Positions 33,655-60,100 of a stretch of DNA of 64,000 nt are shown in pieces. A program made the translations under genes and the position numbers. Position 1 is the first letter of the stretch. Each line of letters starts with the position of its first letter. The DNA lies in the NCBI RefSeq assembly GCF_035594765.1, contig NC_085845.1, forward strand, positions 18,532,024-18,596,023, written 5' to 3'. Origin of the DNA: Anolis carolinensis (taxonomy: Eukaryota). The notes under the pieces were generated by a model. It did no database searches. It saw only the letters and a list, made by a program, of their open reading frames with translations, and was not told the origin of the DNA.

Positions 33655-33695
<41 letters not shown>

Positions 33696-37236: not shown

Positions 37237-37857
37237 CACTACGTAACACAATTTTTAATCCTGGGTTATAAATTTCATTTCCTAATTGGTTCTATCATAA
37301 AAAACCTTCTGCAAGACATCCTGCAGCATATTTTGCTATAGTTTTTCAATGAATAGAGTCTCAACCAAATCAACATAGCTTCTGACAGCAGCAAAAACAA
37401 AGTTTCTGGAATATAACAACTACTGTACTTTCAAAGTAAATACTGCACAAAGTAAGTGCTGGTGGCGCAGCAGGTTAAACCACTGAGCTGCTGAACTTGC
37501 TGACTGAAAAATTGGTGGTTTGAATCTGGGGAGTGGGGTGAGCTCCCACTGCTAGCCCCAGCTTCTGCCAACCTAGCAGTTCAAAAAAAATGCAAATGAG
37601 AGTAGATCAATAGGTACTGCTCTGGTGGGAAGGTAATGGCGCTTTATGCAATCATGCCAGCCACAGGACCTTGGAGGTGTCTACGGACAACGCTGGCTCT
37701 TCAGTTTAGAAATTTAGATGAGCACCAACCCCCAGAGTCAGACACAACTAGACTTAATGTCAGGGGAAAACTTTTACCTTTACCTATTGTACAATTAAAC
37801 AGGAAATAACACTTTCAAACCAGGAACAGATTTTTTTTCATATTAGGTTACATAGTG
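37237..37857. mobile_element. Non-autonomous DNA transposon with CACTA-like ends (Chapaev-type?), containing a Sauria SINE at about 37458-37785
   Basis: TIR CACTACGTAAC / GTTACATAGTG. Confidence 0.6.
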
Positions 37858-39023: not shown

Positions 39024-39037
39024 AGTTTCTGTTTCCC
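39024..39037. promoter_or_regulatory. ISRE in the HERC5-like promoter
   Basis: AGTTTCTGTTTCCC fits the consensus AGTTTCNNTTTCNY; about 280 nt upstream of the ATG; additional GAAA motifs at 39066-39095. Confidence 0.75.
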
Positions 39038-39312: not shown

Positions 39313-39646
39313 ATGCCCGCTGGGAAGAAACAACCCGCGAAGATGCCCAAAAGGGAAAAGATGCGAAGATGCCCGAAAGAGATGCCCAAGAAGAGGGAGA
39401 CTTTGGGTAAAGGCAAGGCGCCCTCCCAATCCGGCCCACCACCCACTCCATCCTCGGGCAAATCGATGGGGCTGAGGCTGTTCCCCGAAAGGGATCAGGT
39501 TTGCCGGGTTGACCCTGGAGCTATCCGACAGATCAGCTGCAAACACGGGTACCTGGCTGTCGTGGGGACGCAGAAGCGAGACGTGTTGGTGTTTGAGCCA
39601 GCAGCTGGGAAGCCAGGATGCCCAAATGCGGCCAGGAGGAAACCCA
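39313..39646 (+). CDS. HERC5: HERC5-like exon 1
   Basis: GC-rich; MPAGKKQPAKMPKREK...LRLFPERDQVCRVDPGAIRQISCKHGYLAVV; donor CCA|GTGAGT. The start codon is uncertain because several in-frame ATGs are present. Confidence 0.75.
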
Positions 39647-42600
39647 GTGAGTAGCCGAGGAAGGGACAGTGCTTGGACTACAACTCCCACATTCCTCGTC
39701 CAGGGAGTGGCTGGGAGTTGCAGTCCAGACAAAAAAAGGAAGAACCGCCTTTCCAATTTACGGGGTTCTCCTTGGTGATCATCACTTACTTGGTTGGTGG
39801 TTTACCCAGTCAATTTTAAACTATGCTTTTTACTTTGTATTTTGTTTGTATTGATGTTTTAACCTTTGCTCTATGTACAGTAGAGTCTCACTTATCCAAC
39901 ACTCGCTTATCCAACGTTCCGGATTATCCAATGCATTTTTGTAGTAAATGTTTTCAATATATTGTGATATTTTGGTGCTAAATTCGTAAATAAAGTAATT
40001 ACTACATAGCATAACAGTGTATTGAACTACTTTTTTGTCAAATTTGTTGTATAACATGATGTTTTGGTGCTTAATTTGTAAAATCATAACTTGATTTGAT
40101 GTTTAATAGGCTTTTCTTAATCCCTCCATATTATTCAACATATTCGCTTATCTAACGTTCTGCCGGCCCGTTTATGTTGGATAAGTGAGACTCTACTGTA
40201 TTTTAATACATGTATTTTAATGTTATTCTGTTTTATCTGTATGTTTTAACTTGAACCCTGAAAACGGGGTAACAAATACAATGTATTATATTGTAATATC
40301 ATTATTATCATGGGCTTGCTTGATTCCCGGCAGGACAAATGTGCTTTCATAGCAAGAGGGCCATCAGTTTAGACACTGTAAAAGTTAGGGCAATCCGAGT
40401 CCTTGAACTGCTCTGGCTCAGTGCTATCCAATCCTGGGCATTGTAGTTTTACAAGGACTTTGCCTTCCCTGCCAGAGAGTGCAGGTGGCTCACCAAACTA
40501 CAACTCCCATGTGTTGTTCAAGGCCGGAATCACTAGGTTGCTGTGAGTTTTCCAAGCTGGATGGCCATGAAGAAGCATTCTCTCCTGGCGTTTCACCCAC
40601 ATTTATGGCAGGCATCCTCAAAGGATGTGATGTCTGTTGAACCTTTCAGTTTGAAAGCCCAACTGTTTTCTGCCTGGAGGAATCCTTTGTTGGGAGGTGT
40701 TAGCTGGCCCTGATTGTTTCTTGTCTGGATTTCCCCAGTTTTTGAGTGTTGTTCTTTATTTACCGTCCTGATTTTAGAGGATTTTTAAAGATAATACTGG
40801 TAGGATTCCCTGTATTAAAAGGAGGAAACCATGAAAATGAACAACATCTGGCTACAAGTATTTTTTTAAAAAAAAAACACTCTAAAATTAGGAGAGTGAA
40901 TAAATAACAACACTCAAAACCAGGGGAATTCCAGATAGGAAACAATCAGGGCCAGATACTTACCTCCAAACAAAGTATTCCCCCAGGCAGGAAACAGGCA
41001 GGCTTTGAAGCAGAAAGGCCATTCAGTTCTAATCAAGGTGGTCAGTTGCAACATAATAATAATAAAACTTTATTTATACCCTACCACCATCTCCCCTGGG
41101 GACTCGGGGCGGCTCACAATGTTACAAAAGTAACAGCGCAAATACATTAACAATATATACAGTTTATAACACAAGAAGATGATAAAACAGAAGTTAAAAC
41201 AAAGGTTTATACAACAGTAATACAGTAGAGTCTCACTTATCGAAGCCTCGCTTATCCAAGTTTCTGGATTATCCAAGCCATTTTTGTAGTCAATGTTTTC
41301 AATATATCGTGATATTTTGGTGCTAAATTTGTAAATACAGTAATTACAACATAACATTACTGCGTATTGAACTGCTTTTTCTGTCAAATTTGTTGTAAAA
41401 CATGATATTTTGGTGCTTAATTTGTAAAATCATAACCTAATTTGATGTTTAATAGGCTTTTTCCTTAATCCCTCCTTATTATCAAAGATATTCACTTATC
41501 CAAGCTTCTGCCTGCCCGTTTAGCTTGGATAAGTGAGACTCTACTGTAATATCAAACAACCACCAATGCAATTCAGTCAACTTCAAAGGTTGGGGGGGGG
41601 GGGGGGGAACTATAGCAGCAATATAAGATAAAATCATTAGATTAAAATACCCCGATGAAAGGAACCTAATAACATTCAGAATAGAATTATAATGAGAACA
41701 TTCACACTTTCCTTAAACAGACAAGAGTTCTTTCTCCCACGCTGGGCATTCCACAGATATGTAAACTTCCTTTCTTAGTTTTCCCATATACCTCACAACC
41801 TCTGAGGATGCCTGACATAGATGTGGGTGAAACGTCAGGAGAGAATGCTTCTGGAACATGTCCATACAGCCCGAAAAACTCACAGCAACCCTACAACTCC
41901 CATGATTCCATAGCATTGAGCCATAGCAGTTAACGTGGCATCATTACTTCTACAATGTACATGTTCCCCATTGGTAGCTTAAACAGAAGGCTATTGAACA
42001 GGCATGGGAGGATAAGCTTTCGTAGAATCAGGGTGTATCACTGTAGAATTAATGCAGTTTGACACCACTTGAACTACAGTGGTTCAATGCTATGCAGTTT
42101 TCAAAGTTGTAGTTGCAGCACTCTTTGGCAAAGAAGGTTAAAGACTTTGCAGTTAGTTTAACTGGTGTCAAAAATTTGCAATTATTTGCAGATTTGCAAT
42201 TACTTGCAATGTGTTGATACACCCCTCACTGCTAAGAGATTTTTTGTCTCTGAAATAATCATAAAATTGATTGTAGTGGTCCTACTGGGTCATAGAGTGA
42301 TTTCCAAACTTCTTGGCCCTGGGTGTGTGTGTGTGTACGCCTTCCTGTCACCAAATTATGGCAACACCATGGATTTAGTAGAATTTCCTTAAAAATTAAA
42401 TTTTGGAGGTGGTTTTCTTCGAAATAAGACCTGTAAGTGGTCTCTGTCCAAAGTAATATTTGCCTGAGAAAATCCAATGAAATTCATGAGGTTGCCATAA
42501 ATCCACAAGTAACTTGCATAAACACATATGCAACCCAGTATTATGTTGAAAGAAGCCTTCAAATAATCTTTAGATTCAGAACAAATTTACACTAGGCCCC

Positions 42601-43708
42601 CCCAACTTGGGGTGCATCTACATTATAGAATTCAGTTTGGCACCACTTTAACAGCCATAGCTCAATGTTATGGAATCATGGGAGTTGCAGTTTTACAAGA
42701 TCTTTAGCCTTTCTTGCAAAAGAGTGCTGGTGCCTCACCAAACTATGAATCCCGTGATATTATATGTATGAGCCAAGTGGTATCGAACTGCATTAATTCT
42801 TCAGTGCAATGCACCCATGGTTATTTAATTTTGCATTTATGTAGTGTTAGTTTTGAATAACGGGTTTGTTGAAACGTGTTCTTTAGTTTTTTGAAGAGCC
42901 AGAACCCCATTTTTTCCATATTGCTTCTGCTTCTATTACTAACATGTTCTCTAAAGACTTTAACTTTCAGTCTTAGGCAGGAAAGTTACGAATTCTGGAA
43001 GTTTTAGTCAAACCACATCAGAAAGGCCTAATTTTCACCCGTTGTTTACATCATCGTGCCTTTCAGTTTCTATTCTGGAGATAGGACACCATGTGGACAT
43101 GTGTAATTATGTAATAATTTTTAAAAGATGTCATAGAGCAGACTAGGGATGCATCTAGATTGTGGAATTCATAGTTTGACACCACTTTAACAGCCATGAC
43201 TCAATCCTATGGAATCCTGGGAGTTGTAGTTTGGTGAGGCAACAAAAAAGCAGACTAAAGACCTTGTAAAACTACAACTCCTATGATTTCATCGCATTGA
43301 GCCATGGCACAAAATTTCACTAGTTTGCTATTTACAGCTTGATCTTTATTCTGTGCTGTTCAATTAATCAGAATTCTCAAAGTGATTTGAAAGCCAAATT
43401 ATAAAAACATGTATAAAGCTATGCCTGAGATTGTATTGTTCAATCTTGCAGAACACATCAAGTTGAAAAAGAACAGCAAAGTGGATTTGTTGGACTCTGA
43501 AGTATCTCACCTGCTCATCCTATCATCAGAAGGAAGACTTTCTGAACACAGTCTTGCATCCAGAAGTGTTAATTCAGAACCAAGGTAGGAGTCCCTCCAT
43601 TACATTGCATGACAATTATTTTTGGTGGTTCAAATGATCCTCAATCTGATGTGGGGCAGCAGCCCAGCACAACATTAAGGGGTAGATGCGGTTTTAATTC
43701 CATGTTTC

Positions 43709-43773
<65 letters not shown>

Positions 43774-46700
43774 ACATTTCTTTGTACTTGGTTTTACTCC
43801 CATTATCCAGACCAGATCATCTTAGTTGGCAGAGAGGTATATACTTGTTAATAAAAACATTAATAAAAACTTTCAAATCATTCTTGTTATGTCAGAGGTA
43901 GTGGTTTGAGCTTTAGACTGTGACTCTGGAGACTATTGTTTAAATCCCTGTCATGGAAACTCACTTGGTGGCCTTCAACAAGTCACACTCTCTCAGCCTC
44001 AAATGATGGCAAAGGCAACTCCCCCCTGAACAAGTCAGAAACTCCATTTAGGTACACAGATGAACATATTAGCATCCAGCACAACTTCTATGTGCATGAT
44101 ATGTTCCTGGACTTTATATGGATAGATGAAATCAGAGTGAACCCTATTGAAGTGAAGGACTTCTGGTTTAAGAATATTGCTGGAGGTACTAGAAAATGCT
44201 CAGAGGACCTATTTTGTCATATGTTGAAAAATGAATGCATGAATACTGGTCCTGCGGCTATGGATATGGGGATTGTACAAAACAGGCATTATGTTCATCT
44301 GCTCCCAATTTGGCGTTTTAAAATATAGCAAACCCATTCAAGTTTGTTTATAGTCCTCATATTCCAAAGGTATTTTCCCTCTTGATTCACTTGCCTAATT
44401 TATGGAGTACTTACAGAAATGTTGACACTTGATTGACACGTGTGTGCATTTTTTATAAAACAGATTACTGAAAGAATTAGGAAACAAGCGGATTGTTCAA
44501 ATTGCGTGTGGTGACCATCATTCTATGGCGCTTTCAGAAGGTATTAAGCATTTTTTATGTATCTCTAATTTTTTTTTTTGTTAAAAATCACAGAAAATTT
44601 AAAGCAATCATCTTAGAAGTGTGCCGTTAAACAACTTTGTCTGTTGTGCCATGCCTCAAGCTGAAAGGAGAGGGGGGTAAAAAATAAAAATAAAATCAGC
44701 CACAAAGTCAGACGGAGCCAGGCAGAATCAAGCCAGGCACTGGTCCGACCAAAAGACACCTATGTCCCTTCTACACTGCCATATAAAATCCAGATTATCT
44801 GATTTGAACTGGAGTAACTGCGCTCCGTGCAGTCATGCCAGCCACATGACCTTGGAGATGTCTATGGACAACCCTGGCTCTTCGGCTTAGAAATGGAGAT
44901 GAGCACCAACCCCCAGTTGGACACGACTGGACTTGTCAGGGGAAACCTTTACCTTTACCTATATGGCAGTGTAGATTCATATAATCCAGTTCAAAGCAGA
45001 TAATATGGATTTTCTGCTTTGATCATCTGGATTTGATCACTGGGTCCCTGGTGGTGGCGCAGTGTGTTAAAGCACTGAGCTGCTGAACTTGCAGACTGAA
45101 AGGTCAGCCGCTGTTAGCCCCAGCTCCTGCCAACCTAGCAGTTCGAAAACATGCAAATGTGAGTAGATCAATAGGTACCGCTCCGGCGGGAAGGTAACGG
45201 CGCTCCATGCAGTCATGCCGGCCACATGACCTTGGAGGTGTCTATGGACAACGCCGGCTCTTCGGCTTAGAAATGGAGATGAGCACCAACCCCCAGAGTC
45301 GGTCACGACTGGACTTAACGTCAGGGGAAAACCTTTACCTTTACCATCTGGATTATATGGCACTGTGGAATACTTTATATTGTTCCTGATGTTCAACCAA
45401 ATAACTTATGAATATTTTATCCATCTCTAGCGCGTACTTTAACTGATTCTTCATAACAGAGTTCATAGAGGGAACTCTGAGAGATATCATGCCTGAGGGA
45501 AATAGTCACACACCTTTTCAGGTGTTGCAGTCCACTGTGCATCCTCACTGAGACCTACACACAGACACCTGTTGAGAACCTCAGTGTGTATTGTATTCAG
45601 TCACATTGCTTCTTGTTGTATTAAGGAGGAGAACTCTTTGCCTGGGGTCAGAATGAATATGGTCAACTTGGAGTGGGAAGGAAGAGCAGCACTATTGGAC
45701 AACCACAGCCGGTGTGGCCTCTTGAAAACGTTCCTCTGGCCCAAATTGCAGCTGGTTCAGCTCACAGCATGGCTCTATCTTTGTCTGGCACTGTCTTTTC
45801 TTGGGGAAAGAATGCTTTTGGTCAACTGGGACTCGGAGACACAGCAGGTGAGGAAAAACTGATATAAATGTGATGGAATCTGTATCTGAGAAATACCTAT
45901 CAGTTAAATGAAAAGCGAGGCATATCTCCTTTAACAAAGCCTCTGGCAGCAAATATCCTTTTAACAAGTCTTTTAACACCTACTTAGACCTCTCTTTGAC
46001 TTCATCCTCTGTCTAGCTAGAAGTTTTTTAAGCAGCATTCCATTGTCAAGGTACAAGAGTATCTTTACAGTAAACAAAGCTTGCTTTGGGAATGTATCCA
46101 TACTGTAGAATTAGCACAGTTTGACACCACTTTAACCGCCATGGCTCAATGCTATGGAATCCTGGGAATTGTAGTTTGGTGAGGCAAGAGCGTACTTTGG
46201 CAGAGGCTAAACGCCTTGGAAAACAACACCTTCATTGATTTCATAGCGTTGAGCCATAACAGTTCAAGTGGCGTTGAACTGCATTCACCTAACAGGGTAG
46301 ATGCATCCTTAGTCTCTAGTTATTGTTAATGCATACAATACAAAGATACAATCAGCAACATTTTACATACAATTCCAGCTGTGTATATTCAGCTAGACAA
46401 AATCATTTCTAGGTATAGTGATAAACTATTTCATTATCTGTTTCGCTTCTTAAAGATCTACTGGCAATCTTTCAGCATGGTTCCATTTAACTTTTAATCC
46501 TATTTCAGAAAGATGCTTCCCTATGCATGTGAAGGCCTTGGAAGATAAGAGAATAGCATTCATTTCATGTGGCGGAGAACACACTGCAGTTCTTTCAAAG
46601 GTTTGCATGGGTTGTTGGTTTTATTAGCTTAGTAGCTTTACATTTCTAATGGACCTTTCGTAACTTCTGCCATTTTTTAAAGTTACCATAGACTACTACA

Positions 46701-49700
46701 TTACAGAAGAATTCATCCAAATCCCCCACGCTAATAGCCATAATGCAAAAAATATAGTCAGCCCTGCATATTCATGGATTTTGTATCCATCAATCATCAC
46801 TGCCAAACAGGATGGCGTCTCAACAAATAACAAATTCCAGGATTCCATAGCATTGAGCCATAGCAATTAAAAAGGTGTCAAACTGCATTAATTGTGCATG
46901 TGGCAGGGCTCAGCTTGCATTGTAATAAGTGGTCTGTGGTTTGCTCTTCTCCGCACATGCATGTTGTGGACTCCACTTTGTGGCCCCATTTCTTAAGGTT
47001 GGCTTTGCATCTCATGGTGCCAAAGTGCAGCCTGTTCAGCGCCTTCCAAAACACCCAGTCTTTTCTGTGCTCAGGAGGGAGTCTCTCATTTGATATCAGC
47101 CATGGCTTGAGGTTCTGGGTTTTAGCCTGCCACTTTTGGACTCTCGGTTGCTGAGGTGTTCCTGCGAGTATCTCTATAGATATTAGAAAACTATTTTTTT
47201 ATGGCATGCTGGCTGATATCTGAGCAGGGGATGGGCCAGAGATGTCACTGCCTTGGTCCTTTCATTGTTGGCTGCTACTTCCCATCGGATGTCAGGTGGT
47301 GGAATATCGGCTATACAGTACAATTTCTCCAGTGGTGGGGAGCATAGATGTCCTGTGATAATGTGGCATGTTTAATTAAGAACCACATCCACTGTTTTAA
47401 CATGGTGAGGTGTGTTCCACACTGGGCATGCATATTAAGCAGCAGAGTAGCAAAGCGCAAAGGCAGATGTCTTCACTGTGTCTGGCTGTGGTGCCAGTCA
47501 GCTTTCATATGATATTATTTATAGCACCCACTTTTTGCTTGATAGTCAAGCAGTGCTTCTTGCAAGTCAACCAGAAGTAACTTGCAAGGCAGAATATGAA
47601 TCCAATACATAAAAATAGAAGGAACAAACTGAATATGTTATAGAAAATAACGCATTATTAATTATTCAAAATTATCCATTTCCAGTATACTGAACCAGCA
47701 TGGTGTAATAGTTTGAGTGTTGTACTATGGGAAAGGGTTTGAATTTCCTCTTGGCCATGGAAACACACTGGCTGACCTTGGGCATGGCTCAGCCTCAGAG
47801 GAAAAGCAAAAACAAATTGCCTCAGAACAAATGTTGCCGAAAAACACACCATGATACATTTGCCATAGAGTTGTAATAAGTCAGGGAACAAACAACAAAT
47901 TGTGGTCCCAAAATTAAATTTTCCAAGCTCTTCCAAAGACCCTGGTACTATGTGTACTATTGTCTTCTGACAACTGTATTCAGAGAGAATTTCCCATACA
48001 AAGAGCAGCAGTAGAGAATTGGATGATATCTTTAACTTCTTGCCCTACCGTGACAAATGTTCCTTCTCTATGAATTATCAGCAGTTGTTTGTGCTGAGGA
48101 GTGACATTATTTTCTTTTGTCCGTGAAGGATGGGATGGTCTGCACCTTCGGAGATGGTAGCCATGGACAACTTGGTCACAACTCCAGATACAATGAATGG
48201 TTTCCACGTCTGGTGACAGAGCTGTCTGGGGCTCAAGTATCTCAGATAGCTTGTGGAAGGTAAGGCATGGCTAGTTCAGGGGAGAGCAGGGACCAGTTAT
48301 TAACATTTTTAAATATCTGCCAAAATTCTTTTAAGAAGCACCATAGTACAATTTGTCATGCTTTAAAAGCTACCAGTATTAATGGCAGGAAAGGCTTCTC
48401 ATCATCGGCAATGACCCCAAATCATAGGTTGATCCTGATCCACTGCACTGAGGAAATCACCAAATGCTTGACAAAACCCTTTCACTTCCATAGTAAAAGC
48501 TGTTTTGGGAGTTAGACTTGGAAACATTTGATGTCAGTAGAGATTCCACACATATTTTTCCTTTAATTCTGCTAATAGATGGCACACTCTTGTCTACGTC
48601 CCAAACCTCGGGGAAGTCTATTCTTTTGGATCTGGAGCAGAAGGACAGCTTGGAAAGGGGGAGAAATGTGACCGACTAATACCACTTCCTCTTGATTTGA
48701 CTGTGAATGGCCAAAAGATGATCCGAGGTAAATCGTGTGCTTTATTTGTACAAGTATAGTTGAGTTGTGTAGGTTGGAATCAAGAGAATTCTAAATTTAA
48801 GAAACACCTTTAAGTTGTTGCCCTTGGTGGCGCAGTGTATTAAACCGCTGAGCTGCTGACCAAAAGGTTGGCAGTTCGAATCCGGGGAGCGGGGTGAGCT
48901 CCCACTGTTAGCCCCAGCTTCTGCTAACCTAGTAGTTCAAAAACATGCAAACGTGGGTAGATCAATAGGTACCTTCCCGTTACCTTCTGGCGGGAAGGTA
49001 AAGGCATACCATGCAGTCATGCCGGCCACTTGATCTTGGAGGTGTCTACACACAATGCCAGCTCTTCAGCTTAGAAATGGAGATGAGCAGCAACCTCCAA
49101 CGACGAGACTGAATGTCAGGGGAAAACCTTTACCTTACTACCTTAATTTGGTGTTTCCCATTAGCTACAGCTGGTCCTCCACATTTGCAGCGTCCACTTC
49201 TGCAGATTTATTATTTGCAGATTAAATTAATATGTTCTTCTCGGAATCTCTAGGTCCTTAAGCATGACTCTATGGTCAGCCTCCTCCAGAGAGTTGTGTT
49301 GGATGACCTATAGATTTGTAAAAGGAACACTTCTCTAGGCATTGCAGGTCCTCCAATGTGATTCTGTGGTCACCTTTTTGTATATGTTGATCACAGAGTT
49401 GTGCTGAAGCACCTATAGATTCCAAGAAATGTGTTCTTTCAGATAAAAAGTAGAAGGGGATAACAGCTACTTTAAGAGAAAATGGCTGGACTAATAATTC
49501 TGTAATCATATTTTTGTCTTATGTTTGACATTGTAATTTCAAGAAACATTTCTATTTTCTGACAAAAAAAGTGCAAAATTGTTTAAATAACTTCTGATTA
49601 ATTGTTTACTTTACTATCTATTGTAGGAAAGAATATCCCGGAGGAAATGGTTAAAATCATTGCTGGAGAGGACCAAAGCATTGTGCTTCTGTTAAAGGAA

Positions 49701-52700
49701 AAGGTAAACTAATATTGGAGATAGTGAATGGAAAAAGGTGGTGAGACTGACAAGTCTACTGACACATTTGAAAGATATAGGAAAATATACAGAAATACTA
49801 AGACACAAAAATGCATAATTATTGGAAGGGGTGGGGGTTCCACTTCAGCAGCAACAATTTGAGGGGAAATAACTCTTTACCGAACACAGCTCTGATTTTC
49901 TTAAAAGGTGAAATACTGCCTTATCATCCAAAACATGTTTCAAAACCCAACTTAAATATTTATGGAATCATTACAGCACAATTTCCACATTATTCTGGTC
50001 ATACTAACCATATATTATTTGACACATGCGGGGACATGGGAAAAGCCTCCTGCAAGGTTGGTAAAAACATCAAAAACATCTGGTCGTCCCCTGGGCAACG
50101 TCTTTGCAGACGGTCAATTATCTCACACCAGAAGCGACCTGCAATTTCTCAAGTCGCTCCTGACAAGAAAAAAAATTGACACATTCATTCCCAATTTCAC
50201 TTGTGGTTCTGCTTTGAAGTCACCAGAAGAAGAAGAAATTACAGAGCATATGAAAACATATTTTGGTTTTTGTCTTATTTTCTACAGCAAAAATATGCAA
50301 ATTTAAACCGAACTCTTGCCAGAGTGGAGGAGGAAAAGACTGAAAAGTGGGCTTCTAATTCGGATCCTAAATGCTGGCAGAACATAGAACAGTAAGTCTC
50401 TGTTAGATTTTTACAGTTGCTGTTTTAAAAAAGAAGCTATGTGCAAATCTTTGTCATAGTTTGGTTTTTCTGGCGTTTACATTCCTAATTCCAAATTAAA
50501 GAGAAGAATACATTATTTAGTGTATGTGGAATGTAGGATTAGGGAGTGAATAGGGAGGAACGATGTGAGTTGCATTACTGCGACATCTGGAGGATTATAA
50601 TATTCTCACTTCTAGTTAAATGGGTTTGTAGGGGCTATTTTTGCAGTTGTGGATGTCTCAGGAATTCTTGGACTTGAACAAAAAATGTCATGTTTTGAGG
50701 TTTACTATCTAGCCTTGTGAGCTACTATGATTTTTTGTACCCAGGCTGAAAATCCTCTTAAGGAGTAGAACGAGATAAGCCCTTTGGCCTCAACCCCAGA
50801 ACTTGATAGAAACTTGTTAGAGAAGACTAACTAAACAGGACAAGCATGGTTTAACTTCTAGCCCACCTCCTATGCTTTTTCAAAAGAAGAGTGCCGAGAA
50901 GTTCAAGACCTTTTAAAACTGCAACTCTGATGCATATAATTGAACCATGACAGTTAAAGTGGTGTCAGACTGCATTAATTTTATAGAGTAGATGTATCCT
51001 AGGCCTATTTTCCAGGTCAAGCAAGTTACCCCAGGATACGGAGTTGGAGAAAACATGTCAGATCTGGGTTTGGATAGTACTTCCCATGATGTAAAATAAC
51101 ACTAAGGGAACAAGTAACCATTCTATTGCTTCTCTTTCTCTGTTGCCTCTTATCCCTTCCTTCTCTATTATCTAAAAGTAAGCAATGTATAATATTCAAT
51201 AGGGAGCTTCTGCTTGAAAATGGAGATTTAACGGAGAAACTGAAATCAACTCAAAATAACTCAGAGCAGAAGCCCCTTGTCACTTGCAAGAAATGCTGAA
51301 CTCCAAAAGCAAAGGCTCAAAGACTATTGGTACATTGTTCTTTTTTGCCTAACAGGGAAATTAAGTTGATCTTCTCATCTGCTGCTTGCATCAATGGAAG
51401 CTTTCAAGAGAAGAGGTAAATTGCACCCACTCTTTCTGTCAACTAGGGCTGAGATTAAACTTGGTGGATTTATCTTTTAATGATTAGCAAGAAGAATATG
51501 TGAAAACTCTGTGGACATTCACAGACATGCGTTATCACCAAGTCCTCTTTGCTGGCAAATAGGGCTTGCAAAGTATTCATGATTGATAACAAAGAAAGAA
51601 ACTGAGATTCTAACTGGTTCATTGTATTTCTGACAGAGAGAAAACTTGCAGAACATCCTCAAAGGCTGCCAATGTGGATATGCCAGCAGTGTTCCTTTTC
51701 TGTGAAAAGATTGCTGCTAAGCCTAAAGTCATCACACAGGTAAGTCTCAACCCTGGAATCTGATCTATCAGGATAGAATAGAAAATTGTCAGATTTTTGT
51801 CCTATAGGAAAAGCAGAATAACTTCCTTCCATTAAAGCAATGGTTCCTAGCCTTTGGACCTCCAGGTGTTTTGGACTTCAGCACCCACAGTTCCTAACAG
51901 CTGGTAAGCTGGCTGGAATTTCTGGGAGTTGAAAGCCCAAAAACGTGGAGACCCAAAGGTTGGGAACCACTGCTTTAAAGCCAATATCCAGTGAATCTGC
52001 AAAGTTGGATTGTCATTTCTGAGATCCAATTTTTGGTAGTACATGGGAGAATTGTGGGGAATTAAAACAGAGTATTAAAAACCATTACTATATTAAACTG
52101 AATTTACTACTCTAGAGTAAGTTTTTTATTTTTGTTATGTTTTTCCCCTCCGGAAGATGTTGAAGGCCCTTCGAAAGCTTCTCAACTCTCTTTCATTGGT
52201 TCCTGCCTCTCCTGAAGCACTCAGAGTCTTCCTCATTGTTCCTGTCCTCTTATGGAAGGAGGCTATTACATCTGATTGTCTCCTTGGTCAACTGGCACAA
52301 GCCATCTGCAAACTTCCAGAAAAGGACAAGCAAATCCTTGGTAAAGCTGGTTTATTTGGAGAGGGCATTCATCACTTCACTTCAATAGTTTTGAGAATAT
52401 TAAATATGCATACTTTTAGAGTCATTTTAGTGTTTTGGAATAAAAAGAAAGGGAATACTTTGAAAGAACAATTGTCCACGGACTCTTAGCAGTCTGTTTT
52501 GCTTACAGTGATGCCTAGCTTGCTTGTTCTTACATTTAAACAAGAAAAAAATGTTATTATATCCCAATTTTATTGTCCCTTCAAAAAAGATAATATGGAG
52601 AGGGGCTTCCTTTGGCCTCACCTTCCAGCAAGGGTATATCAGATTGACTAGGACTCTGGGAAACCAAGATTTGAATCCTGGCTCAGTCATGGAAGCTCAT

Positions 52701-55700
52701 TGGGTGATCTTGGGCAAGTCACATACTCTGAGGAAAGCAATGGCAAACCTTCTCTGAATAAATCTTGCCAAGAAACCCCTAGGAGGAACAGAACCACAAG
52801 GACAATTTTTTCCTCAAGTATTTGTGTGGTTAGCTCCAAGACTGCAATGTATACTCATCAGCTCTCTTTTCAGAAACCTGGTGGTCTAATCTAGACGTCA
52901 CATTCTTCAAGGATCTAGTGGGCATGTATCAAAGACTTATCAGTGCCAATCTTTCTTCTGTCATTAAACACCTGAGATGTTCAGAGAGTGTAACCCTATC
53001 AGTGGACTTCGTTTGGCCTCTTCAGGTTCTACAGATGCTTTATGAGGTAGGAAGACCTTGAATGGAAAATTTGAGGCATTGTATGAGAGAGTCTCAACAT
53101 TGCCTAACTGAAGGATTGATGACATATTTGTTCTGTGTCAAGGTAATGGTTCAATGTAGTGAAATGTTTAACTCATTGTTTCAATGTAAGTGTGTAAGTT
53201 TGCTTCGGTAAGCAATCCAGTACTGAAATAGTTAATCGCATAGAGCAATGATTTACTGCATAGAGCAATGATTTACTGCCTAGAGGGGAAAGGAATTAGA
53301 CTTCCGCTTTTGCCTGCGTGGAAGGAAACATGTCACAGAGAATGGAATTTGAGAGGAGTTATTCTTTACTGATAAGTCTTAGCTTGCTGTAAGAGCTCCG
53401 GCTGCTATTTGTGTATATAGCTGTGTAAATAAAGATTTATTACCGCCGGGATCGACAGACAGCTATGCAGTCTTATTTGTTCGTGCTACTAGGCAGATGC
53501 TGAGTTGCCGAATGGAGGGGAGAATTGAGACGGAAGGCTGTAAGTGTCTCAATATATCCGCCTCACATCCATCATCCACATTTGACATTCTGTTCCCCCA
53601 CTTTCTCTGTGATGACCTGGGAACTACATACCAATGGCTTTAAGGTTAACTAGCAGCCTACTGGCAACTCGGAAACCCTCTGATCTAAGGAGAAGCAGGA
53701 AAGGGCTGTTAGGGAAGACGGAGGAAAAGGCAATGTGGGAGTTGGAGGCAGCACCTTGACCATTACTGACCTCAACCCCAATGGAGTATCATCAGAGATC
53801 ACTAAGAGTGAACACCAGAACTTAGAAAATTTACTATTTTGGCTGTGGCTTCCAGAATTATCCAGCCAACATGATTCCAGATGCTCCCTAAATTAGCTGG
53901 GCAGACTTGGTTTGAGGGTCTACACCTGATGGAAAAGTTTTGGTGGAACTTCTCTGCAACTGCTCTATCTCCTTAGATCTCCCTTGTGCTAAGATGTATA
54001 CCTGATTTTGAGTGTTGCAGTGTAGGATTGGAAAGAACTGGCTTCTGCAAAATCATGAAGCTCACAAAGTGACCACAAGTCAGTCACTGTCTGTCAGCTT
54101 GACTTTAAAATAAGCAGCAAAGAAGCAGCAGTGAGCAAACTCACGCATGCTCCCTTCAGATTAATGGATAGAAATATAACTTTGGATTTTTTTTAAAATT
54201 GGCATTTTTTCATATGAGGCAGTTTCTTTAAAGTTGTCTCACAGATTTTGTCCTCCATTGTACTATTACTGTTGAGCCAAAATATTTTGCAGCAAGTTTC
54301 ACATACACAGCATTTTGTTATTCTTTATTGTAAACTTGTATTCATAAATTCAGGTAAATCGCAAGACCAACTTCACAATCCAAGAAAGCAACTTTTACAT
54401 TCCTGAACTGAAAAGAATATTGGCTCCTCCAAGTAGGAATAACATATGGAATGAGGAACAAGTAAGTAGTAACTGAAATTGTTTTTACCTTTAGGAGTCA
54501 AGTGCCATTTCCTCCCGTTTTTTATTCTTCAGATTCAGATTTATTCCACTGTATTATAAATATTAGCGAGCCACTGTGTGTAGTAGTTTGAGCATTGGAG
54601 ACCAGGGTTAGATTCCCCACTTGGCCTTGGAAACCCAATGAGTGACCCTGGGCGAGTCACACATGGCTTTGGATGAAGCAGCCCAGCCCCAGAAAACCTC
54701 ATAATAGGGCTTCCTTTGGGCCTCCATGAGCTGAAAACGACTTGAAGGTATACAACAACTATGACTGTAAATAGCAGTATCTAGGTGAGACACTCCAAAA
54801 TGCCATTTTTAACATCTTAAACCCTCACAGGCCACTAAAACTAAAACAAATATAAATATGCATAACAGTGATAGCAGTGGCAATATGCATTACTTCTACC
54901 GTGTTGAAGTACTCAAAGCTATTACAAGGTTGACCATCTAAGGTGCAAAAGGAGAATATTGTTTCACCAAATTTGTTTCAAAAATATTGTTTTTCTGTTT
55001 TCTCTTGTGCAACTTTGGAGCAGCTGATACGAAGACTTGTTTCAAAGGGGGACGAAATACAAGTAAGGATTACTTGCTCTGTTTTGTTATGCTTTAGTCT
55101 TCTGGTGTCATTAATTGGTTAGCTGTCTTATCTTTCCATGTTTATCTCAGCATGAAGTTTTCTTCTCATTTACCTTCCTTTTACTCTGCTCCCCCTTTCC
55201 TACAAGAGACGCATGTTATTTGCCAAGAAACATCTTGTTTAGAGGTCACCATATGCAGGTATTTTTGTAGTGACTAAAAAGCCTAGGTGTTTCAATATGA
55301 AGAAACGTTTTTGTCTTCCTGGCTGAAATTATCCCACTTAAATCTGACTGTAACAGCTCCAACACTGGAATAAGCTGCCTCAGAATCTCTACAGGTTTTT
55401 AAGTCAATGGCCATCTGCCGGGAGTGCTCTGATTGTATGCTCCTACATGGCAGAATGGGGGTTGGATGGGATGGCCCTTTGCGGTATTTTCCAACTCTAG
55501 GATTCTGGCCTGGGATTCTAGTCTCTATTTTATAGACTGTTCAGAGCATAGAGTCAAAGGAAGGTATTAATGACCATCAGTGCAAGTGTTCTTAGGAATC
55601 TGGAAAGTGAAATACATTTTACCTCATGTTTTCACTGAACATCTGAAATCCACTGAGGAAACAGAAGCATGGTTGCGCTCAGGCAAAACAATGTATGTGT

Positions 55701-56487
55701 GTAAGCAATCTGCATGCAAGTCAATGGAGGATGAAACTTCTTCATGTAACTCAGGCCTGTTCTACACTGCCAGATAATCCAGGTTATCAAAGCAGAAAAT
55801 CCACATTATCTGCTTTGAACTGGATTATCTGAGTCTACACTGCCATATAATCCAGTTCAAAGCAGATAATGTGTATTTTATATGGCAGTGTGGAAGGGGC
55901 CTGAGTGTACATTTTGGCGTTCACTCCATCATACTGCCCTATCATACCGTTTCACATCTCATACCATTATTCTTATTATCCTGTTTCAGGTGTCCTCTAT
56001 CAGTACCACCAGGCATTTTCCTATTTTTTTTAATTTCTGCAAAAATCTGGATTTTTCCCATCTTCTCATACTTCTTTTTATCCATGGAACACATGAAATA
56101 TGTTAACAATGTAGTGAAAGACTGTAGACTTTTCAGTATTGAATTTGAAAGTTAGCAATCTTATACTGTAAATTACTGCTTTGTCATTTCAGCTTGCCTT
56201 TGATATACTCAGCCAGTTCCCTTGCATTTTTGAGTTGGAAGATAAGATTCTTCTGCATACACTATGCTGTTTGTTTCGGCATTTTAACTACAGCTTGGTA
56301 AGTGCATCAAAAATTGCAAGGTATAACTGTAAAATATTTATCATAGCCCTGTGACCTAATGTGTGTGTCCTTACAGAACAACCCTGGCATTGTTAGCAAG
56401 CTGCACGTTAGAAGGCAACATTTGATGCAGGATACATGGCAATGTATAAGAAGTGTATCATCAAACTGGTTTCAGCAGTTTTTTAAA
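39313..56487 (+). CDS. HERC5: HERC5-like RCC1-domain protein; span of 17 in-frame exons (734 codons), no HECT exons found in the window
   Basis: Basic N-terminus, then LRLFP..RQISCKHGYLAVV / KHIKLKKN..HLLILSSEG / GGELFAWGQN / ACGRWHTL matching recalled human HERC5. Lies between HERC6 and PIGY. Exon sizes and phases parallel HERC6 (77, 131, 60 nt). Confidence 0.8.
39878..40198. mobile_element. Tc1/mariner-type MITE
   Basis: Full TIRs and TA TSD. Confidence 0.9.
40520..41892. mobile_element. Two oppositely oriented Penelope fragments; the plus-strand copy is interrupted by a LINE tail and a MITE (41223-41546)
   Basis: 40520-40803 minus; 40820-41055 and 41697-41892 plus. Confidence 0.75.
41799..41839 (+). 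ncRNA. Minimal type I hammerhead ribozyme motif in a Penelope pLTR
   Basis: CCT-CTGAGGA-T-GCCTGAC-ATAGAT-GTGGGT-GAAAC-GTC^AGG: intact catalytic core, stem II, loopless stem III. Confidence 0.65.
42610..42816. mobile_element. Palindromic MITE (GGTGCATCTACAC...GATGCACC family)
   Basis: Copies or fragments at about 40370, 41895, 42030, 43147, 46090-46308 and 50880. Confidence 0.7.
43452..43584 (+). CDS. HERC5: HERC5-like exon 2
   Basis: HIKLKKNSKVDLLDSEVSHLLILSSEGRLSEH. Confidence 0.85.
43709..43773. repeat. (TATC)n microsatellite
   Basis: Directly visible. Confidence 0.95.
44464..44540 (+). CDS. HERC5: HERC5-like exon 3
   Basis: LLKELGNKRIVQIACGDHHSMALSE; 77 nt. Confidence 0.9.
45042..45345 (+). 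mobile_element. Sauria SINE (partial copy also at 44814-44960)
   Basis: tRNA-like head, ACCTTT tail. Confidence 0.9.
45626..45847 (+). CDS. HERC5: HERC5-like exon 4
   Basis: GELFAWGQNEYGQLGVG...[35 protein letters not shown]. Confidence 0.92.
46509..46600 (+). CDS. HERC5: HERC5-like exon 5
   Basis: RCFPMHVKALEDKRIAFISCGGEHTAVLSK. Confidence 0.9.
46894..47570 (-). mobile_element. Vingi-type retrotransposon fragment
   Basis: Homologous to 3785-4410. Confidence 0.7.
48129..48259 (+). CDS. HERC5: HERC5-like exon 6
   Basis: DGMVCTFGDGSHGQLGHNS...PRLVTELSGAQVSQIACG. Confidence 0.92.
48579..48727 (+). CDS. HERC5: HERC5-like exon 7
   Basis: WHTLVYVPNLGEVYSFGSGAEGQLGKG..DRLIPLP. Confidence 0.92.
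48820..49143 (+). mobile_element. Sauria SINE
   Basis: A/B-box head, ACCTTT tail. Confidence 0.88.
49627..49703 (+). CDS. HERC5: HERC5-like exon 8
   Basis: KNIPEEMVKIIAGEDQSIVLLLKEK. Confidence 0.85.
50288..50391 (+). CDS. HERC5: HERC5-like exon 9
   Basis: QKYANLNRTLARVEEEKTEKWASNSDPKCWQNIE. Confidence 0.85.
51356..51415 (+). CDS. HERC5: HERC5-like exon 10
   Basis: EIKLIFSSAACINGSFQEK; 60 nt. Confidence 0.88.
51637..51739 (+). CDS. HERC5: HERC5-like exon 11
   Basis: EKTCRTSSKAANVDMPAVFLFCEKIAAKPKVITQ. Confidence 0.8.
52157..52340 (+). CDS. HERC5: HERC5-like exon 12
   Basis: MLKALRKLLNSLSLVPASPEALRVFLIVP...LAQAICKL. Confidence 0.85.
52874..53046 (+). CDS. HERC5: HERC5-like exon 13
   Basis: TWWSNLDVTFFKDLVGMYQ...LQVLQMLYE. 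Confidence 0.85.
53136..53587 (+). mobile_element. Solo LTR (452 bp)
   Basis: TGTCAA...TTGACA termini, 5-bp TSD TTCTG, internal AATAAA, tandem 20-mer GCATAGAGCAATGATTTACT x2. Confidence 0.82.
54354..54461 (+). CDS. HERC5: HERC5-like exon 14
   Basis: VNRKTNFTIQESNFYIPELKRIL. Confidence 0.83.
55024..55062 (+). CDS. HERC5: HERC5-like candidate mini-exon 15 (39 nt; 42 nt if the upstream AG is used)
   Basis: Pyrimidine tract, GAGCAG tandem acceptor, LIRRLVSKGDEIQ, donor CAA|GTAAG; symmetric phase 0. Confidence 0.5.
56193..56297 (+). CDS. HERC5: HERC5-like exon 16
   Basis: LAFDILSQFPCIFELEDKILLH, homologous to the HERC 'C.YPF.F...K' motif. Confidence 0.82.
56377..56487 (+). CDS. HERC5: HERC5-like exon 17 (pre-HECT motif)
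   Basis: NNPGIVSKLHVRRQHLMQDTWQCI, matching the 'L.VRR..L..D' motif at the HECT boundary; donor AAA|GTAAGA. Confidence 0.8.
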
Positions 56488-57169
56488 GTAAGATACCCAG
56501 TTTTATACCTCTTACTGTGTTGTGATAAGACTCACCTGAAATTCAAATGTAATATTTTACCAGCCATCACATCCACATATTATATGTTAATGCTTTGGAA
56601 GAAACATCCAGTGAAGCAGCTAACATTGTGTTTTGTCATAGTTTAAGGTAGATCATGGAAATATTGTTGGTGCCCCCCCCCCCCCCCCCCACGAGCTGGT
56701 AGATTCTGGCAGTTGTAGTCTAGAAAAATATCATTATAAACACCCATGCTCTCTTAAGAGTTTTTTTTTAAAAAAAAAATCTTGTTAGGCTCACTCAACC
56801 CTGGCTAATTAGCAACGTTATTCACAACATGTTATACTGCCTCCATTATAACTAATTTAAATCACACATGATTTACTTCAGAGGAAAAGAAGTGAAATTA
56901 TTTTTAGTTGTACTGGAGATACATGTCTTCTAGTAAACTAGACATCTCCAAACGGGTGCCTGTCAAATATGTTGGACTACAAATCCCATCACACACTATC
57001 AGAAACATTCCTAGAGCTGGCAAGAGATGAAGCCAACAGATGGAGGATAGCAGTTTACGTATATACACCACAAAACAATGAGTTTTTACAGTGTTCTGCC
57101 TCCCTGCAACATTTCTACATAATTGACAATATGTAGTCTCGCTTCCCAATTTATATGGCATTAGAATGC

Positions 57170-57484
57170 TGGTATATTAAAGCACTGAGCTGTTGAACTT
57201 GCAGACCGAAAGGTCGCAGATTCAAATCCCGGGAGCGGAGTGAGCGCCTGCTGTTAGCTCCAGCTTCTGCCAGCCTAGCAGTTCGAAAACATGCCAATGT
57301 GAGTAGATCAATAGGTACCACTCCGGCGGGAAGGTAACAGCGCTCCATGCAGTCATGCCGGCCACATGACCTTGGAGGTGTCTATGGACAACGCCGGCTC
57401 TTTGGCTTAGAAATGGAGATGAGCACCAACCCCCAGAGTCAGACATGACTGGACTTAACATCAGGGGAAACCTTTACCTACCTT
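57170..57484 (+). mobile_element. Sauria SINE
   Basis: Near-identical to the copy at 45042. Confidence 0.9.
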
Positions 57485-58157
57485 TTTATTATCTATGGTA
57501 AACAATTGTCATGGAAAGCAGCACTTTGATGGTGTGTAATCTTGAGGTTACTTGCAGTAATTCATCATTCATTCTTTTAACAAGTAATATGGGCTGACTA
57601 TTAACAATTCAACCAACTCACATAAGGTCTTGAATAACAAAAGCAACATACAGAAATGTGGTGACTTTGGAATTTAATGTAAATGAAGCTGAATGTCCAG
57701 TTAGGCATATTTTATACATAACTAGTAACATGGTCTAGTGGTTTGACCACAGCACTAGTACTGAAAAAAAGAGTCTGAATCTCCAGTCTACCATAGAAAC
57801 CCACAGGGTAAACTTGGCCAAGTCATTCTCTCAGCCTCATAATGCGTTTAATACTAAAAGGGTCTGTGATCAAAATCCTGTCAAAAAAACCCCTTAGGGT
57901 TGCCACATGCTGGAGATGACATACAGGCACTAATCAACAGGACGAATATTTATGATCTTTTAAAAAAGAAACCTCTGAACTAAATCTAATGCTGGATATT
58001 CCTTATTAGAACTAGAAGGGCAAAACCCATTCTTAATGCAACCCATTTCCCTATAATACTGACACCCAGAGGACATATTGAATTCCTGGAAACCCTCTCT
58101 GGAATCAGATTAGTATGTCATGGGAAATTGTAGGTGAGAGGGTTATCCCCCTTTAAG

Positions 58158-58181
58158 GTGAAAATTCAAATAAAGCATTGA
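58158..58181 (+). CDS. Candidate short terminal exon of the HERC5-like gene (VKIQIKH*)
   Basis: Acceptor TTATCCCCCTTTAAG|GTG, phase 0, with AATAAA at 58169-58174. Inference only. Confidence 0.3.
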   Translation: MKIQIKH

Positions 58182-58221
58182 GCAAAATAATAATTACATA
58201 TCTACCTGGTTTTTCAGTTGC

Positions 58222-58227
58222 TTTATT
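58222..58227 (-). terminator. Candidate polyadenylation signal of PYURF-PIGY
   Basis: AATAAA on the minus strand about 610 nt after the PIGY stop. Confidence 0.55.
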
Positions 58228-58836
58228 AATGGGAAATAATTGCTTTTGAATCCCTTTTTGTTCTGTTTTGATCACAATCTGTTAATATCATTAATTCAAG
58301 CGTAAAATCTAAGGGCAGAAAACAGTGCATCTTAATGAAAGAAAAATCCTGACTACTATCTATTATCACCATGTCCAACAATTAAAAAAGGCATCCTGAA
58401 AACACAATAGGGTCATGACAGAAAATCCATTTAGGGTGACATCAGGTATTATTCTGCATGAAATGCCATTCTTCCAAGGAACTGTGATAATTGCTTGAAA
58501 GTATCTGGTAACACGTTAAGTTCTACCATGGTATATTTCTGCACAGGGTTGACTATACAGGTCCAAAGATGGAAATGTAGTCCCTTTCTTTTGGGCAAGG
58601 TAGACAGGTAGTGAAATTACGTAGTGCATTTCATCCACCTTATCTGTATAACTCATCATTATTCCTGTGGATTTGGTTGGGAATGGGAAGAGTAAAAGCA
58701 AGTTTTCTATTTGCTTGTGTGGATGCTTATTTCCATGTGTTAAGTCTGCTGCTTGTTAGGGATGGCTTCAAATCCTACTGCAAACAGATAAAGCAAAGCA
58801 CATCTTTTAGCCCATGTCCACTCATTTCAGCCTAAC

Positions 58837-59052
58837 CTAGTTGTGGCGAAAGAGTTTAAGGCCCATCCAGGTCCAGAGGTGGAAGAACACATAAACTGGT
58901 ATGGTAACTGGAAGCAGCAGGCTGTAGAAACACAGGCTGGTTGTACTTGTGCAGCCCTGAGGAAAGTTTTCATCAACACTGGCTGAATAAAACAGGCCAG
59001 CTAAAGACAACACAGGGATGAGTACAGTCATCGTAGGCAGAGACAGAAACAT
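58837..59052 (-). CDS. PIGY: Phosphatidylinositol N-acetylglucosaminyltransferase subunit Y (71 aa), second cistron
   Basis: MFLSLPTMTVLIPVLSLAGLFYSASVDENFPQGCTSTTSLCFYSLLLP...WTWMGLKLFRHN is nearly identical to recalled human PIGY; two hydrophobic segments. Confidence 0.97.
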   Translation of the reverse strand: MFLSLPTMTVLIPVLSLAGLFYSASVDENFPQGCTSTTSLCFYSLLLPVTIPVYVFFHLWTWMGLKLFRHN

Positions 59053-59093
59053 TTTTCTTCACCTGTGAATATCTTCTATAAGGAGAAAAACAT

Positions 59094-59235
59094 CTAGGTC
59101 TGCTCAGGTTCCCCTTCCTGCTTGTCTTTGCCAATCATCCTGGCAGCTTGGGGGATCATATTAGGGATGCCATCGGTGATGGGGTAGGCAATACCCAGCT
59201 CTTCATTGATTAATTCATTGGTGGATTCCTCATAT
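59094..59235 (-). CDS. PYURF: PYURF/PREY exon 2 (Trm112-like domain)
   Basis: YEESTNELINEELGIAYPITDGIPNMIPQAARM...*; acceptor TTTCCTAG|A. Confidence 0.95.
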
Positions 59236-60100
59236 CTAGGAAACATAACAAATACTGACATGTTAAGTTAGCTAATGCCATTTCTTTAAGAATAGGGTCC
59301 TGGGACAAAGAAGTAGTCAAATCAGTCTTTCAGTAAGATGTAATATGCTATTGGCATTATTATTATATTATAATAATATGAAATCCAGCATATATATCTC
59401 ATTTGCTATGTCATACTCTGTCTTTGGGTCAATAATAATAATATAATATAAACATCATCATCATCATCCTCTTACCCACCTTTCCTTAAGATAAAGAACA
59501 ACATAGTTAAATTATATAGATAAAAACCATTAAAACACATATATTAAAAGACACTGACATAAGATTAAAACCCATTAAAATAATTCGTAGCAATAAACTG
59601 CCACTTTAAAATACAGAGTTTAAAACTGACTTGGTAGGCCTGCTTTAATTGTGCTTTAAAGTTTGAAAGCTCAATTAGCTGTTAAATCTGTTCTGGCAGG
59701 TTATTCCTGCCATATAAAATCCAGATTATCTGCTTTGAACTGGATTACATGGCAGTGTAGACTCAGATTATCCAGTTCAAATCAGAAAATGTGGATTATT
59801 TGCTTTGATAATCTGAATTATGTGGCAGTGTAGAAGGGCCCATTGTCTAAAACCAGCTGATGAAAAGGTCCTCAGTTTAGATTTCTTGCTGTATGAAAAC
59901 CGTGTCCTCCTTTTTGTTGGTATACTGTGCTTTACCTTTGTGTTGCTGAGATTTTCAGGATACATTCAAAGCTACACTGTAGATTATACAGAAATCTAAA
60001 GTCTACCCCTTTCTACACTGCCATATAAAATCCAGATTATCTGCTTTGAACTGGATTATATGGCAGTGTAGAATCCTATAATAATATAATATACTATATA

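Follow-up and report, generated by a model that had tools for sequence, protein, structure and literature searches.

A complete HERC5 gene very probably underlies the apparently ligase-less HERC5 locus of Anolis carolinensis

HERC5 and the analysed locus

Human HERC5 is an interferon-induced E3 ligase for ISG15, and the human PYURF-PIGY gene is located downstream of HERC5. Loss of the ligase domain from a lizard HERC5 whose RCC1 half remained intact and interferon-responsive would amount to a natural experiment on what HERC5 does against viruses independently of its ligase. Such a catalytically dead HERC5 had been proposed in a sequence-only reading of a 64-kb stretch of DNA (hereafter the window), with a fallback in which the HECT exons lay beyond the window and PYURF-PIGY was nested in a long intron. 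In the literature, the protein XP_008109242.1 has been used as 'lizard HERC5', and the lizard and coelacanth sequences of HERC5 grouped by themselves, away from other HERC5 and nearer HERC6 (Paparisto et al. 2018, PMC6002735).

The window was found to be 100% identical to the Anolis carolinensis assembly GCA_035594765.1 (CM069371.1). Two overlapping loci were used to look past its edge: L003 (GCA_035594765.1, CM069371.1), which is 100% identical to window positions 48837-64000, and L004, whose bases 1-34688 are identical to window positions 29313-64000 and on which the map of 24 exons was made. XP_008109242.1 ("E3 ISG15--protein ligase HERC5 isoform X1", 1053 aa) fitted exactly to 24 coding exons when mapped onto the DNA. 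Because of this exact mapping and of the in-phase exons 18-24, the proposal of a HERC5 lacking its ligase domain is refuted. The apparent absence of the ligase is an artefact of the window edge, and the gene is already known and annotated. We are highly confident that A. carolinensis has a complete HERC5 whose HECT exons lie past the window edge, with PYURF-PIGY antisense in the 8.1-kb intron 17. Window positions 39313-56487 are the 5' two-thirds of HERC5, with coding exons 1-17 encoding the N-terminal tail, the RCC1-like domain and the spacer. The spliced product would be a small-HERC E3 ligase of 1053 aa in which both the full HECT domain and the catalytic cysteine are present.

Coding exons 1-17 and the upstream ISRE

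Coding exons 1-17 of HERC5 (39313-56487, plus strand) coincided with those of the sequence-only reading, and its 17 exons with canonical splice sites and 734 uninterrupted codons were borne out by the exact mapping of XP_008109242.1. They comprise exactly 734 codons and end in ...LHVRRQHLMQDTWQCIRSVSSNWFQQFFK, with GT..AG introns throughout; across all 24 exons the acceptors are AG and the donors GT, with the single exception of a GC donor at exon 21. Exon 1 runs from the ATG to a GT donor (39313-39646) and is followed by exon 2 (43452-43584). Exons of the RCC1-like domain are exon 3 (44464-44540), exon 4 (45626-45847, also supported by tblastn), exon 5 (46509-46600), exon 6 (48129-48259) and exon 7 (48579-48727). 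After exon 8 (49627-49703), the spacer occupies exon 9 (50288-50391), exon 10 (51356-51415), exon 11 (51637-51739), exon 12 (52157-52340) and exon 13 (52874-53046). All of these exons lie on the plus strand and were placed by exact protein mapping, with AG/GT borders recorded for exons 2-11 and 13. Whole-protein steps used database records, and exons were concatenated only to check equality with XP_008109242.1 and to compute dN/dS. Exon 12 as the sole query retrieved eight proteins, including a full-length tortoise relative and a 733-aa model from Lerista. A blastp comparison of plus-strand open reading frames between the two window halves gave mostly SINE/LINE matches and was useful solely for locating the RCC1 exons.

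Exons 14-17 were placed by protein mapping and appeared transcribed and spliced in contigs from RNA-like runs. It should be noted that runs X4, X5, X9 and X19 were taken as RNA on a guessed label ('RNA?') and that contigs cannot reveal RNA ends. Exon 14 (54354-54461) was joined to exon 15 (55024-55062) at 54461>55024 in runs X4 and X19, exon 15 to exon 16 (56193-56297) at 55062>56193 in runs X4 and X5, and exon 16 to exon 17 (56377-56487) at 56296/7>56376/7 in run X4, each joint being of the GT..AG type. Exon 17, the final pre-HECT exon (NNPGIVSKLHVRRQHLMQD...FFK), closes in phase 0 with the donor GTAAGA.

A perfect ISRE-consensus motif, GGGAAACAGAAACT, was found at 39024-39037 on the minus strand by pattern search and direct reading, approximately 280 bp upstream of the HERC5 ATG, as the earlier claim of an intact promoter ISRE had it. 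The pattern had 7 matches in the window versus 2.1 expected. Judging from this motif, HERC5 may be induced by interferon through the upstream ISRE.

Intron 17, PYURF-PIGY and the HECT exons

The first 7.5 kb of intron 17 (56488-64000, plus strand) lie in the window, and mapping extended the whole intron to 8122 bp, ending at window-equivalent position 64609. Within 56488-64000, no HECT-like match was detected on either strand by tblastn with the full-length tortoise relative or with the anole's own HECT domain, the latter at word size 2 and E up to 50 (best E 1.8). Both queries did pick up the HECT exons in the HERC6-like gene that lies upstream (28.8-34.6 kb). Thus, the earlier observation that this interval is free of HECT-like sequence was correct. 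The intron holds the antisense PYURF-PIGY gene, SINE copies and a transposon-like open reading frame. On the minus strand, the last exon of PYURF-PIGY (57451-59235, acceptor AG at 59236-59237) includes the end of the PYURF coding sequence, that of PIGY and a long 3' UTR; its contigs covered 57451-59237 in runs X4 and X5 and 57657-59237 in run X19, and 57451 is a lower bound for the exon, the contigs breaking there in a SINE. The PIGY coding sequence (58837-59052, minus strand) encodes 71 aa plus a stop and matched Pfam PIG-Y on the called gene. PYURF coding exons 2 (59094-59235) and 1 (61551-61729), both on the minus strand, reproduced a 106-aa product with a GT..AG intron, and Pfam Trm112p was found on the called gene. 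The PYURF-PIGY mRNA contig extends from 59237 to 57451 or lower, which puts the antisense 3' end at most approximately 1.0 kb away from donor 56487; the distance of 1.7 kb first given for it was too long.

A search past 56.5 kb, which had been set beforehand as the test, recovered the HECT exons from window-equivalent position 64610. Exons 18-24 (seven HECT exons) occupy window-equivalent positions 64610-78873 on the same strand (L004 35298-49561), the first of them starting 610 bp past the window end; on L003, HECT-like matches were located at window-equivalent 64607-64807, 66428-66595 and 67318-67452. After the acceptor aacag, exon 18 reads GTGCAATTCGAAGGAGAGCCTGGGATTGATGATGGAGGC..., corresponding to VQFEGEPGIDDGGLSQEFF; it is in phase 0 with donor 56487 (a 0/0 junction) and has its own donor gtaaaa. 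These seven intact exons, in phase and with a catalytic cysteine, overturn the claim of a dead enzyme, whereas the fallback reading proved exactly right, and the layout is conserved across sauropsids. In A. sagrei, Lerista, Eublepharis, Ahaetulla, Candoia, Pelodiscus, Crocodylus and Dromaius, too, PIGY and PYURF separate the pre-HECT exon from the first HECT exon and are antisense to them, so that the nested arrangement spans the two anoles, a skink, a gecko, two snakes, a turtle, a crocodile and an emu. In every species examined, PYURF exon 1 stands head to head with the first HECT exon at a distance of approximately 0.15-5 kb.

Contigs around the donor of exon 17 are consistent with splicing onward. 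In runs X4 and X5 the exon contig stopped at 56489, and an intron contig began at 56460 and reached 57206 (run X4) or 56664 (run X5); the contigs branched at base 56490 (k=31) and did not reconverge. As exon 18 and intron 17 both open with GT, splicing to exon 18 should make the contigs branch at 56490. A contig of run X9 (56255-56535) ran straight through, and hence the break at 56489 is not due to the sequence itself. A SNP bubble behind this break was rejected, for the intron-path contig extended for 747 bases without reconverging. An assembly gap near 56.5-58 kb was also rejected, considering that the window contains no runs of N and that contigs of independent runs tile 56193-57206 and 57451-59237; the interruption at approximately 57.2-57.45 kb results from a SINE there, as expected of a repeat in short reads. 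From the matching phase and the contig branch, we infer that most transcripts have donor 56487 spliced to exon 18.

In the predicted protein, Pfam HECT covered residues 755-1053 (profile positions 2-306 of 306, E 3.9e-76), that is, a full-length C-terminal HECT domain, and a single N-terminal RCC1-like domain was recognized by Pfam RCC1 (five stretches, E 8.5e-63), RCC1_2 and WD40_RLD at residues 149-398. The E6AP HECT structure 1c4z aligned end to end with residues 735-1053 (E 9e-63). In this alignment the catalytic Cys motif PeAsTCckiLfLPrYs of HERC5 stood opposite PtShTCfnvLlLPeYs of E6AP (PEASTCCKILFLPRY and PTSHTCFNVLLLPEY, respectively), with the C-lobe pattern T-C ... L-P-x-Y and the cysteine approximately 35 residues from the C-terminus. 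The catalytic Cys column was retained in 18 sauropsid orthologues, in which the HECT domain was better conserved than the spacer; between A. carolinensis and A. sagrei, dN/dS was 0.33 over 294 spacer codons and 0.44 over 126 codons of HECT exons 18-20. As judged from these sequences, purifying selection acts on a conserved HECT domain. By analogy with HECT ligases, HERC5 would transfer ISG15 or ubiquitin via a thioester on its cysteine. Among the five NCBI isoforms, isoform X2 lacks exon 23 (a frame shift) and isoform X4 ends after residue 861; both are predicted and without the catalytic end.

Alternative readings and comparison with known systems

A gene truly devoid of a HECT domain, whose dead RCC1-plus-spacer product would serve as restriction factor, decoy or adaptor, might be suggested by the lack of HECT-like sequence in the stretch of intron 17 within the window and by database models of relatives without HECT (733 aa in Lerista, 668 aa in Candoia). 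We regard it as extraordinarily improbable, given that the same genome has the seven intact, in-phase exons 8.1-22 kb downstream, as part of the annotated 1053-aa product, and that the conserved domain is under purifying selection. HECT exons were also found just beyond PYURF in Lerista and Candoia, and therefore their short models are annotation splits. These splits, together with a 324-aa HECT-only gene beside the 668-aa RLD gene of Candoia and the head-to-head position of PYURF, could instead be read as two units, an RLD-spacer gene and a HECT-only gene driven divergently by the PYURF promoter. However, a single protein of approximately 1000-1060 aa is predicted for Anolis and for over 25 further sauropsids, the phases of exons 17 and 18 agree, the contig branch fits onward splicing, and a HECT-only protein beginning at exon 18 would lack an obvious start codon context; we consider two units very improbable.

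Somewhat less improbable, although still quite unlikely, is a minor isoform without HECT besides the full mRNA, arising when transcripts read through the donor, terminate within intron 17 and thereby gain a 52-aa tail (VRYPVLYLLL...VIV and a stop). The contigs that continue exon 17 into the intron, the 52 open codons after the donor and plus-strand poly(A) signals at 57176 and 58169 are compatible with it, and convergent transcription of PYURF-PIGY might favor it. On the other hand, the five NCBI isoforms all end elsewhere, and the intron 17 contig of run X4 had a depth of 12.1, far below the spliced exon contigs (62-98) and no greater than introns 14-15 (10-18), so that it resembles the usual pre-mRNA or DNA background. 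PYURF-PIGY is placed exactly between the substrate-binding half of HERC5 (RCC1-like domain and spacer) and its catalytic HECT half, and there is a slim chance that the nested gene serves to produce a regulated share of partial transcripts, HECT-less ones through termination within intron 17 or HECT-only ones started at the divergent PYURF promoter. If so, lizards would make some ligase-independent HERC5 beside the full enzyme.

With the domain kept and the gene complete and annotated, the locus adds nothing new to HERC5 biology. What it does illustrate is that a gene apparently ending at a window edge should be followed past that edge, and that nested genes in long introns lead to real annotation splits; the "HECT-less" models of Lerista and Candoia could mislead comparative work on HERC5 loss.

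The complete HERC5 described here is the same gene as NCBI XP_008109242.1, with no difference, the window merely ending within intron 17. An RCC1-like domain, a full-length HECT domain and a catalytic cysteine place its product among the small HERC E3 ligases (HERC3/4/5/6). E6AP/UBE3A (1c4z) shares the whole HECT domain including the catalytic Cys motif, but belongs to another HECT ligase family, without an RCC1-like domain. The neighboring HERC6-like gene (approximately 9.3-34.6 kb, plus strand) is a tandem paralogue with equal domain order and seven HECT exons; in contrast with HERC5, it has no gene nested between its pre-HECT and HECT exons, and the two are only approximately 32-51% identical over the HECT exons. 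The gene order, namely HERC6-like at 9.3-34.6 kb, HERC5 from 39.3 kb and PYURF-PIGY at 57.4-61.7 kb (in intron 17), is that of a HERC5 orthologue, although one-to-one orthology with mammalian HERC5 rather than HERC6 is uncertain, the lizard protein having been clustered apart (PMC6002735). Human HERC5 and the anole gene agree in architecture (one RCC1-like domain, then a spacer and, at the C-terminus, a HECT domain that carries the catalytic Cys), in their HERC6-like and PYURF-PIGY neighbors and in an upstream ISRE, whereas in the examined sauropsids PYURF-PIGY sits in the intron before the HECT exons.

Content of the window past exon 17

The HERC5-like gene starts on the (+) strand at 39313 of the window, in which no runs of N are present. 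Its 61-residue exon 12 (window:52157-52339), used as query against a representative protein library, retrieved a tortoise relative of full length (P0002, 1027 aa) and, from the skink Lerista, a model of 733 aa (P0004). On the basis of tblastn with P0002, the window carries two tandem genes, a HERC6-like gene upstream (about 9.3-34.6 kb, with HECT exons at 28846-34591) and then the HERC5-like gene, which is matched at 39.4-56.5 kb by P0002 residues 8-711. No match to residues 712-1027 was obtained downstream of 56.5 kb in the window (E up to 10), and the anole HECT domain as query gave only noise past 56487 in the window (both strands, E up to 50). Thus, the sequence-only reading was correct in observing no HECT domain in the rest of the window. 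PIGY (58837-59052) and PYURF (59094-59235 and 61551-61729) are found there on the (-) strand.

A putative ISRE, GGGAAACAGAAACT, could be recognized upstream of HERC5 on the (-) strand (39024-39037). Two more ISRE-core motifs, GAAACCGAAAC and GAAACTGAAAC, also on (-), were observed 70 bp apart at 10771-10781 and 10842-10852, just 3' of the HERC6-like gene's first RCC1-like exon region.

HECT exons beyond the window end

The first clue to the HECT exons was the Lerista locus (L001), in which the 733-aa model ends at the same pre-HECT exon and is followed by PIGY and PYURF on (-). There, an exon 1.8 kb beyond PYURF exon 1 was 68% identical to P0002 residues 708-757, the start of HECT. By protein look-up, the window's PIGY protein was found in two anole assemblies, both of which have, on the strand opposite PIGY and across the whole 20-kb locus, a called gene that encodes RCC1 as well as HECT domains (1053 or 1060 residues). 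The A. carolinensis locus L003 (GCA_035594765.1, CM069371.1) was 100% identical to window 48837-64000 and contained HECT-like HSPs at window-equivalent positions (the same numbering carried past 64000) 64607-64807, 66428-66595 and 67318-67452. The first HECT exon could be read directly: after aacag it opens with GTG CAA TTC GAA GGA GAG CCT GGG ATT GAT GAT GGA GGC and translates as VQFEGEPGIDDGGLSQEFF, which is the V.F.GE..GG motif previously sought in the window.

The complete protein, XP_008109242.1 (P0141; E3 ISG15--protein ligase HERC5 isoform X1, 1053 aa), was reached by a word search with P0004 and a cluster look-up. Its locus (L004) is identical to window 29313-64000 across the shared part, and PIGY and PYURF are listed inside it, both on (-). 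Exact spliced mapping of P0141 gave 24 coding exons on the (+) strand; database records served as the sequences in all whole-protein comparisons, and exons were joined for checking against P0141. Exons 1-17 (window 39313-56487, 734 codons, all GT..AG) agree to the base with the 17-exon, 734-codon model drawn from the sequence alone. Exons 18-24 were mapped at window-equivalent 64610-64753, 66428-66594, 67320-67386, 75395-75477, 76889-77072, 77685-77784 and 78659-78873, respectively. Acceptors were AG throughout, and the only donor other than GT was a GC after HECT exon 21 (L004:46166-46167, window-equivalent 75478-75479). The phases of exons 17 and 18 are compatible (end phase 0, start phase 0).

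Two explanations of the gene end had been offered. The main one, that this HERC5 has no ligase domain, is refuted by HECT exons 18-24 (window-equivalent 64610-78873), which begin 610 bp past the window end and are in phase with exon 17 (0/0). The fallback, in which the HECT exons lie past the window and PYURF-PIGY is nested in a long intron, is confirmed, intron 17 being 8122 bp in length. The apparent HECT loss is a window-edge artefact on a known gene. Anole HERC5 is already known and annotated by NCBI, and a full-length lizard HERC5 sequence, which clusters apart from other HERC5 sequences, has been used before (Paparisto et al., 2018; PMC6002735).

It should be noted that NCBI predicts further isoforms, of which X2 and X4 would both be without the catalytic Cys. 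Isoform X2 (1010 aa) has residues 1-949 in common and then a frame-shifted tail, which fits a skip of the 100-nt exon 23 (exons 23-24 in L004, window-equivalent 77685-78873); isoform X4 (887 aa) has residues 1-861 in common and then a different tail. In isoform X3, exon 18 is skipped.

Transcript evidence at the exon 17 donor

Four sequencing runs (X4, X5, X9 and X19, labels unrelated to the isoforms), assigned as RNA by guess only, were compared with window 54300-60299, a stretch that stops short of exon 18. GT..AG joints were seen at 54461>55024 (runs X4 and X19), 55062>56193 (runs X4 and X5) and 56296/7>56376/7 (run X4); therefore, exons 14-17 are transcribed and spliced as modelled. For runs X4 and X5, the exon 17 contig stops at 56489, and the next contig begins at 56460 and enters the intron without rejoining, reaching 57206 in run X4. 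With 31-letter words, this pattern is a fork at base 56490. Exon 18 (GTG...) and intron 17 (GTA...) are alike in their first two bases, so the fork expected if 56487 is spliced to exon 18 falls at this very position. In run X9, spliced joints were absent from this stretch, and contig 56255-56535 crosses the donor uninterrupted; thus, the contig break is not a property of the sequence. There is no special retention of intron 17 when depths are compared in run X4 (12.1 for the intron 17 path, 10-18 for introns 14-15 and 62-98 for spliced exon contigs). A single contig spans 57451-59237 in both runs X4 and X5, so the PYURF-PIGY 3' UTR extends to within about 1 kb of donor 56487.

Several other features of the region were observed. 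The poly-C tract of intron 17 (window 56673-56692) varies in length, one run X4 contig being short by 5 bases. A 205-aa open frame in the same intron (63385-63999, (+)) runs off the window end, resembles window 18765-18929 and has the appearance of a transposable-element fragment. A single SINE-like repeat has copies on both strands, at 57200-57480 and at about 15230-15580, 37500-37800, 44820-45390, 48860-49220 and 62480-62840; their summed contig depth was enormous in all four runs, and every short-read contig was broken there.

Conservation of the nested genes and of the HECT domain

In all sauropsid loci that were compared, the intron separating the pre-HECT exon from the first HECT exon contains PIGY and PYURF in antisense orientation. 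These loci are from the anole (window 57451-61729), A. sagrei (L002), Lerista (L001), Eublepharis (gecko), Ahaetulla (colubrid), Candoia (boa; L008), Pelodiscus (turtle), Crocodylus (crocodile) and Dromaius (emu), the last with only about 150 bp between PYURF exon 1 and the first HECT exon. Thus, the nesting is old and stable in sauropsids; the human pair is presumably located downstream of HERC5 instead. The nesting is visible in public annotation, and no discussion of it was found in our literature search. The annotation is split at this intron in Lerista (733-aa HECT-less model; L001:10001-39911 and 48792-48941) and in Candoia (668-aa HECT-less model and then a separate 324-aa HECT-only gene; L008:10001-40508 and 47256-50508). 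These HECT-less entries are gene models cut in two and no real losses, and such split HERC5 entries in databases could pass for ligase-domain losses.

Comparison of A. carolinensis with A. sagrei (Nei-Gojobori) gave dN/dS values of 0.33 over 294 spacer codons and 0.44 over 126 codons of HECT exons 18-20, which indicates constraint, though loose, in a small sample without a confidence interval. Among 18 aligned sauropsid orthologues, conservation of the HECT domain was consistently above that of the spacer, and the catalytic Cys column was retained in all. The Pfam HECT domain covers residues 755-1053 of P0141 (profile positions 2-306 of 306, E 3.9e-76). An end-to-end alignment was also obtained between residues 735-1053 of anole HERC5 and the E6AP HECT structure 1c4z (E 9e-63), in which PEASTCCKILFLPRY of the anole protein stands opposite the E6AP catalytic-Cys motif PTSHTCFNVLLLPEY.
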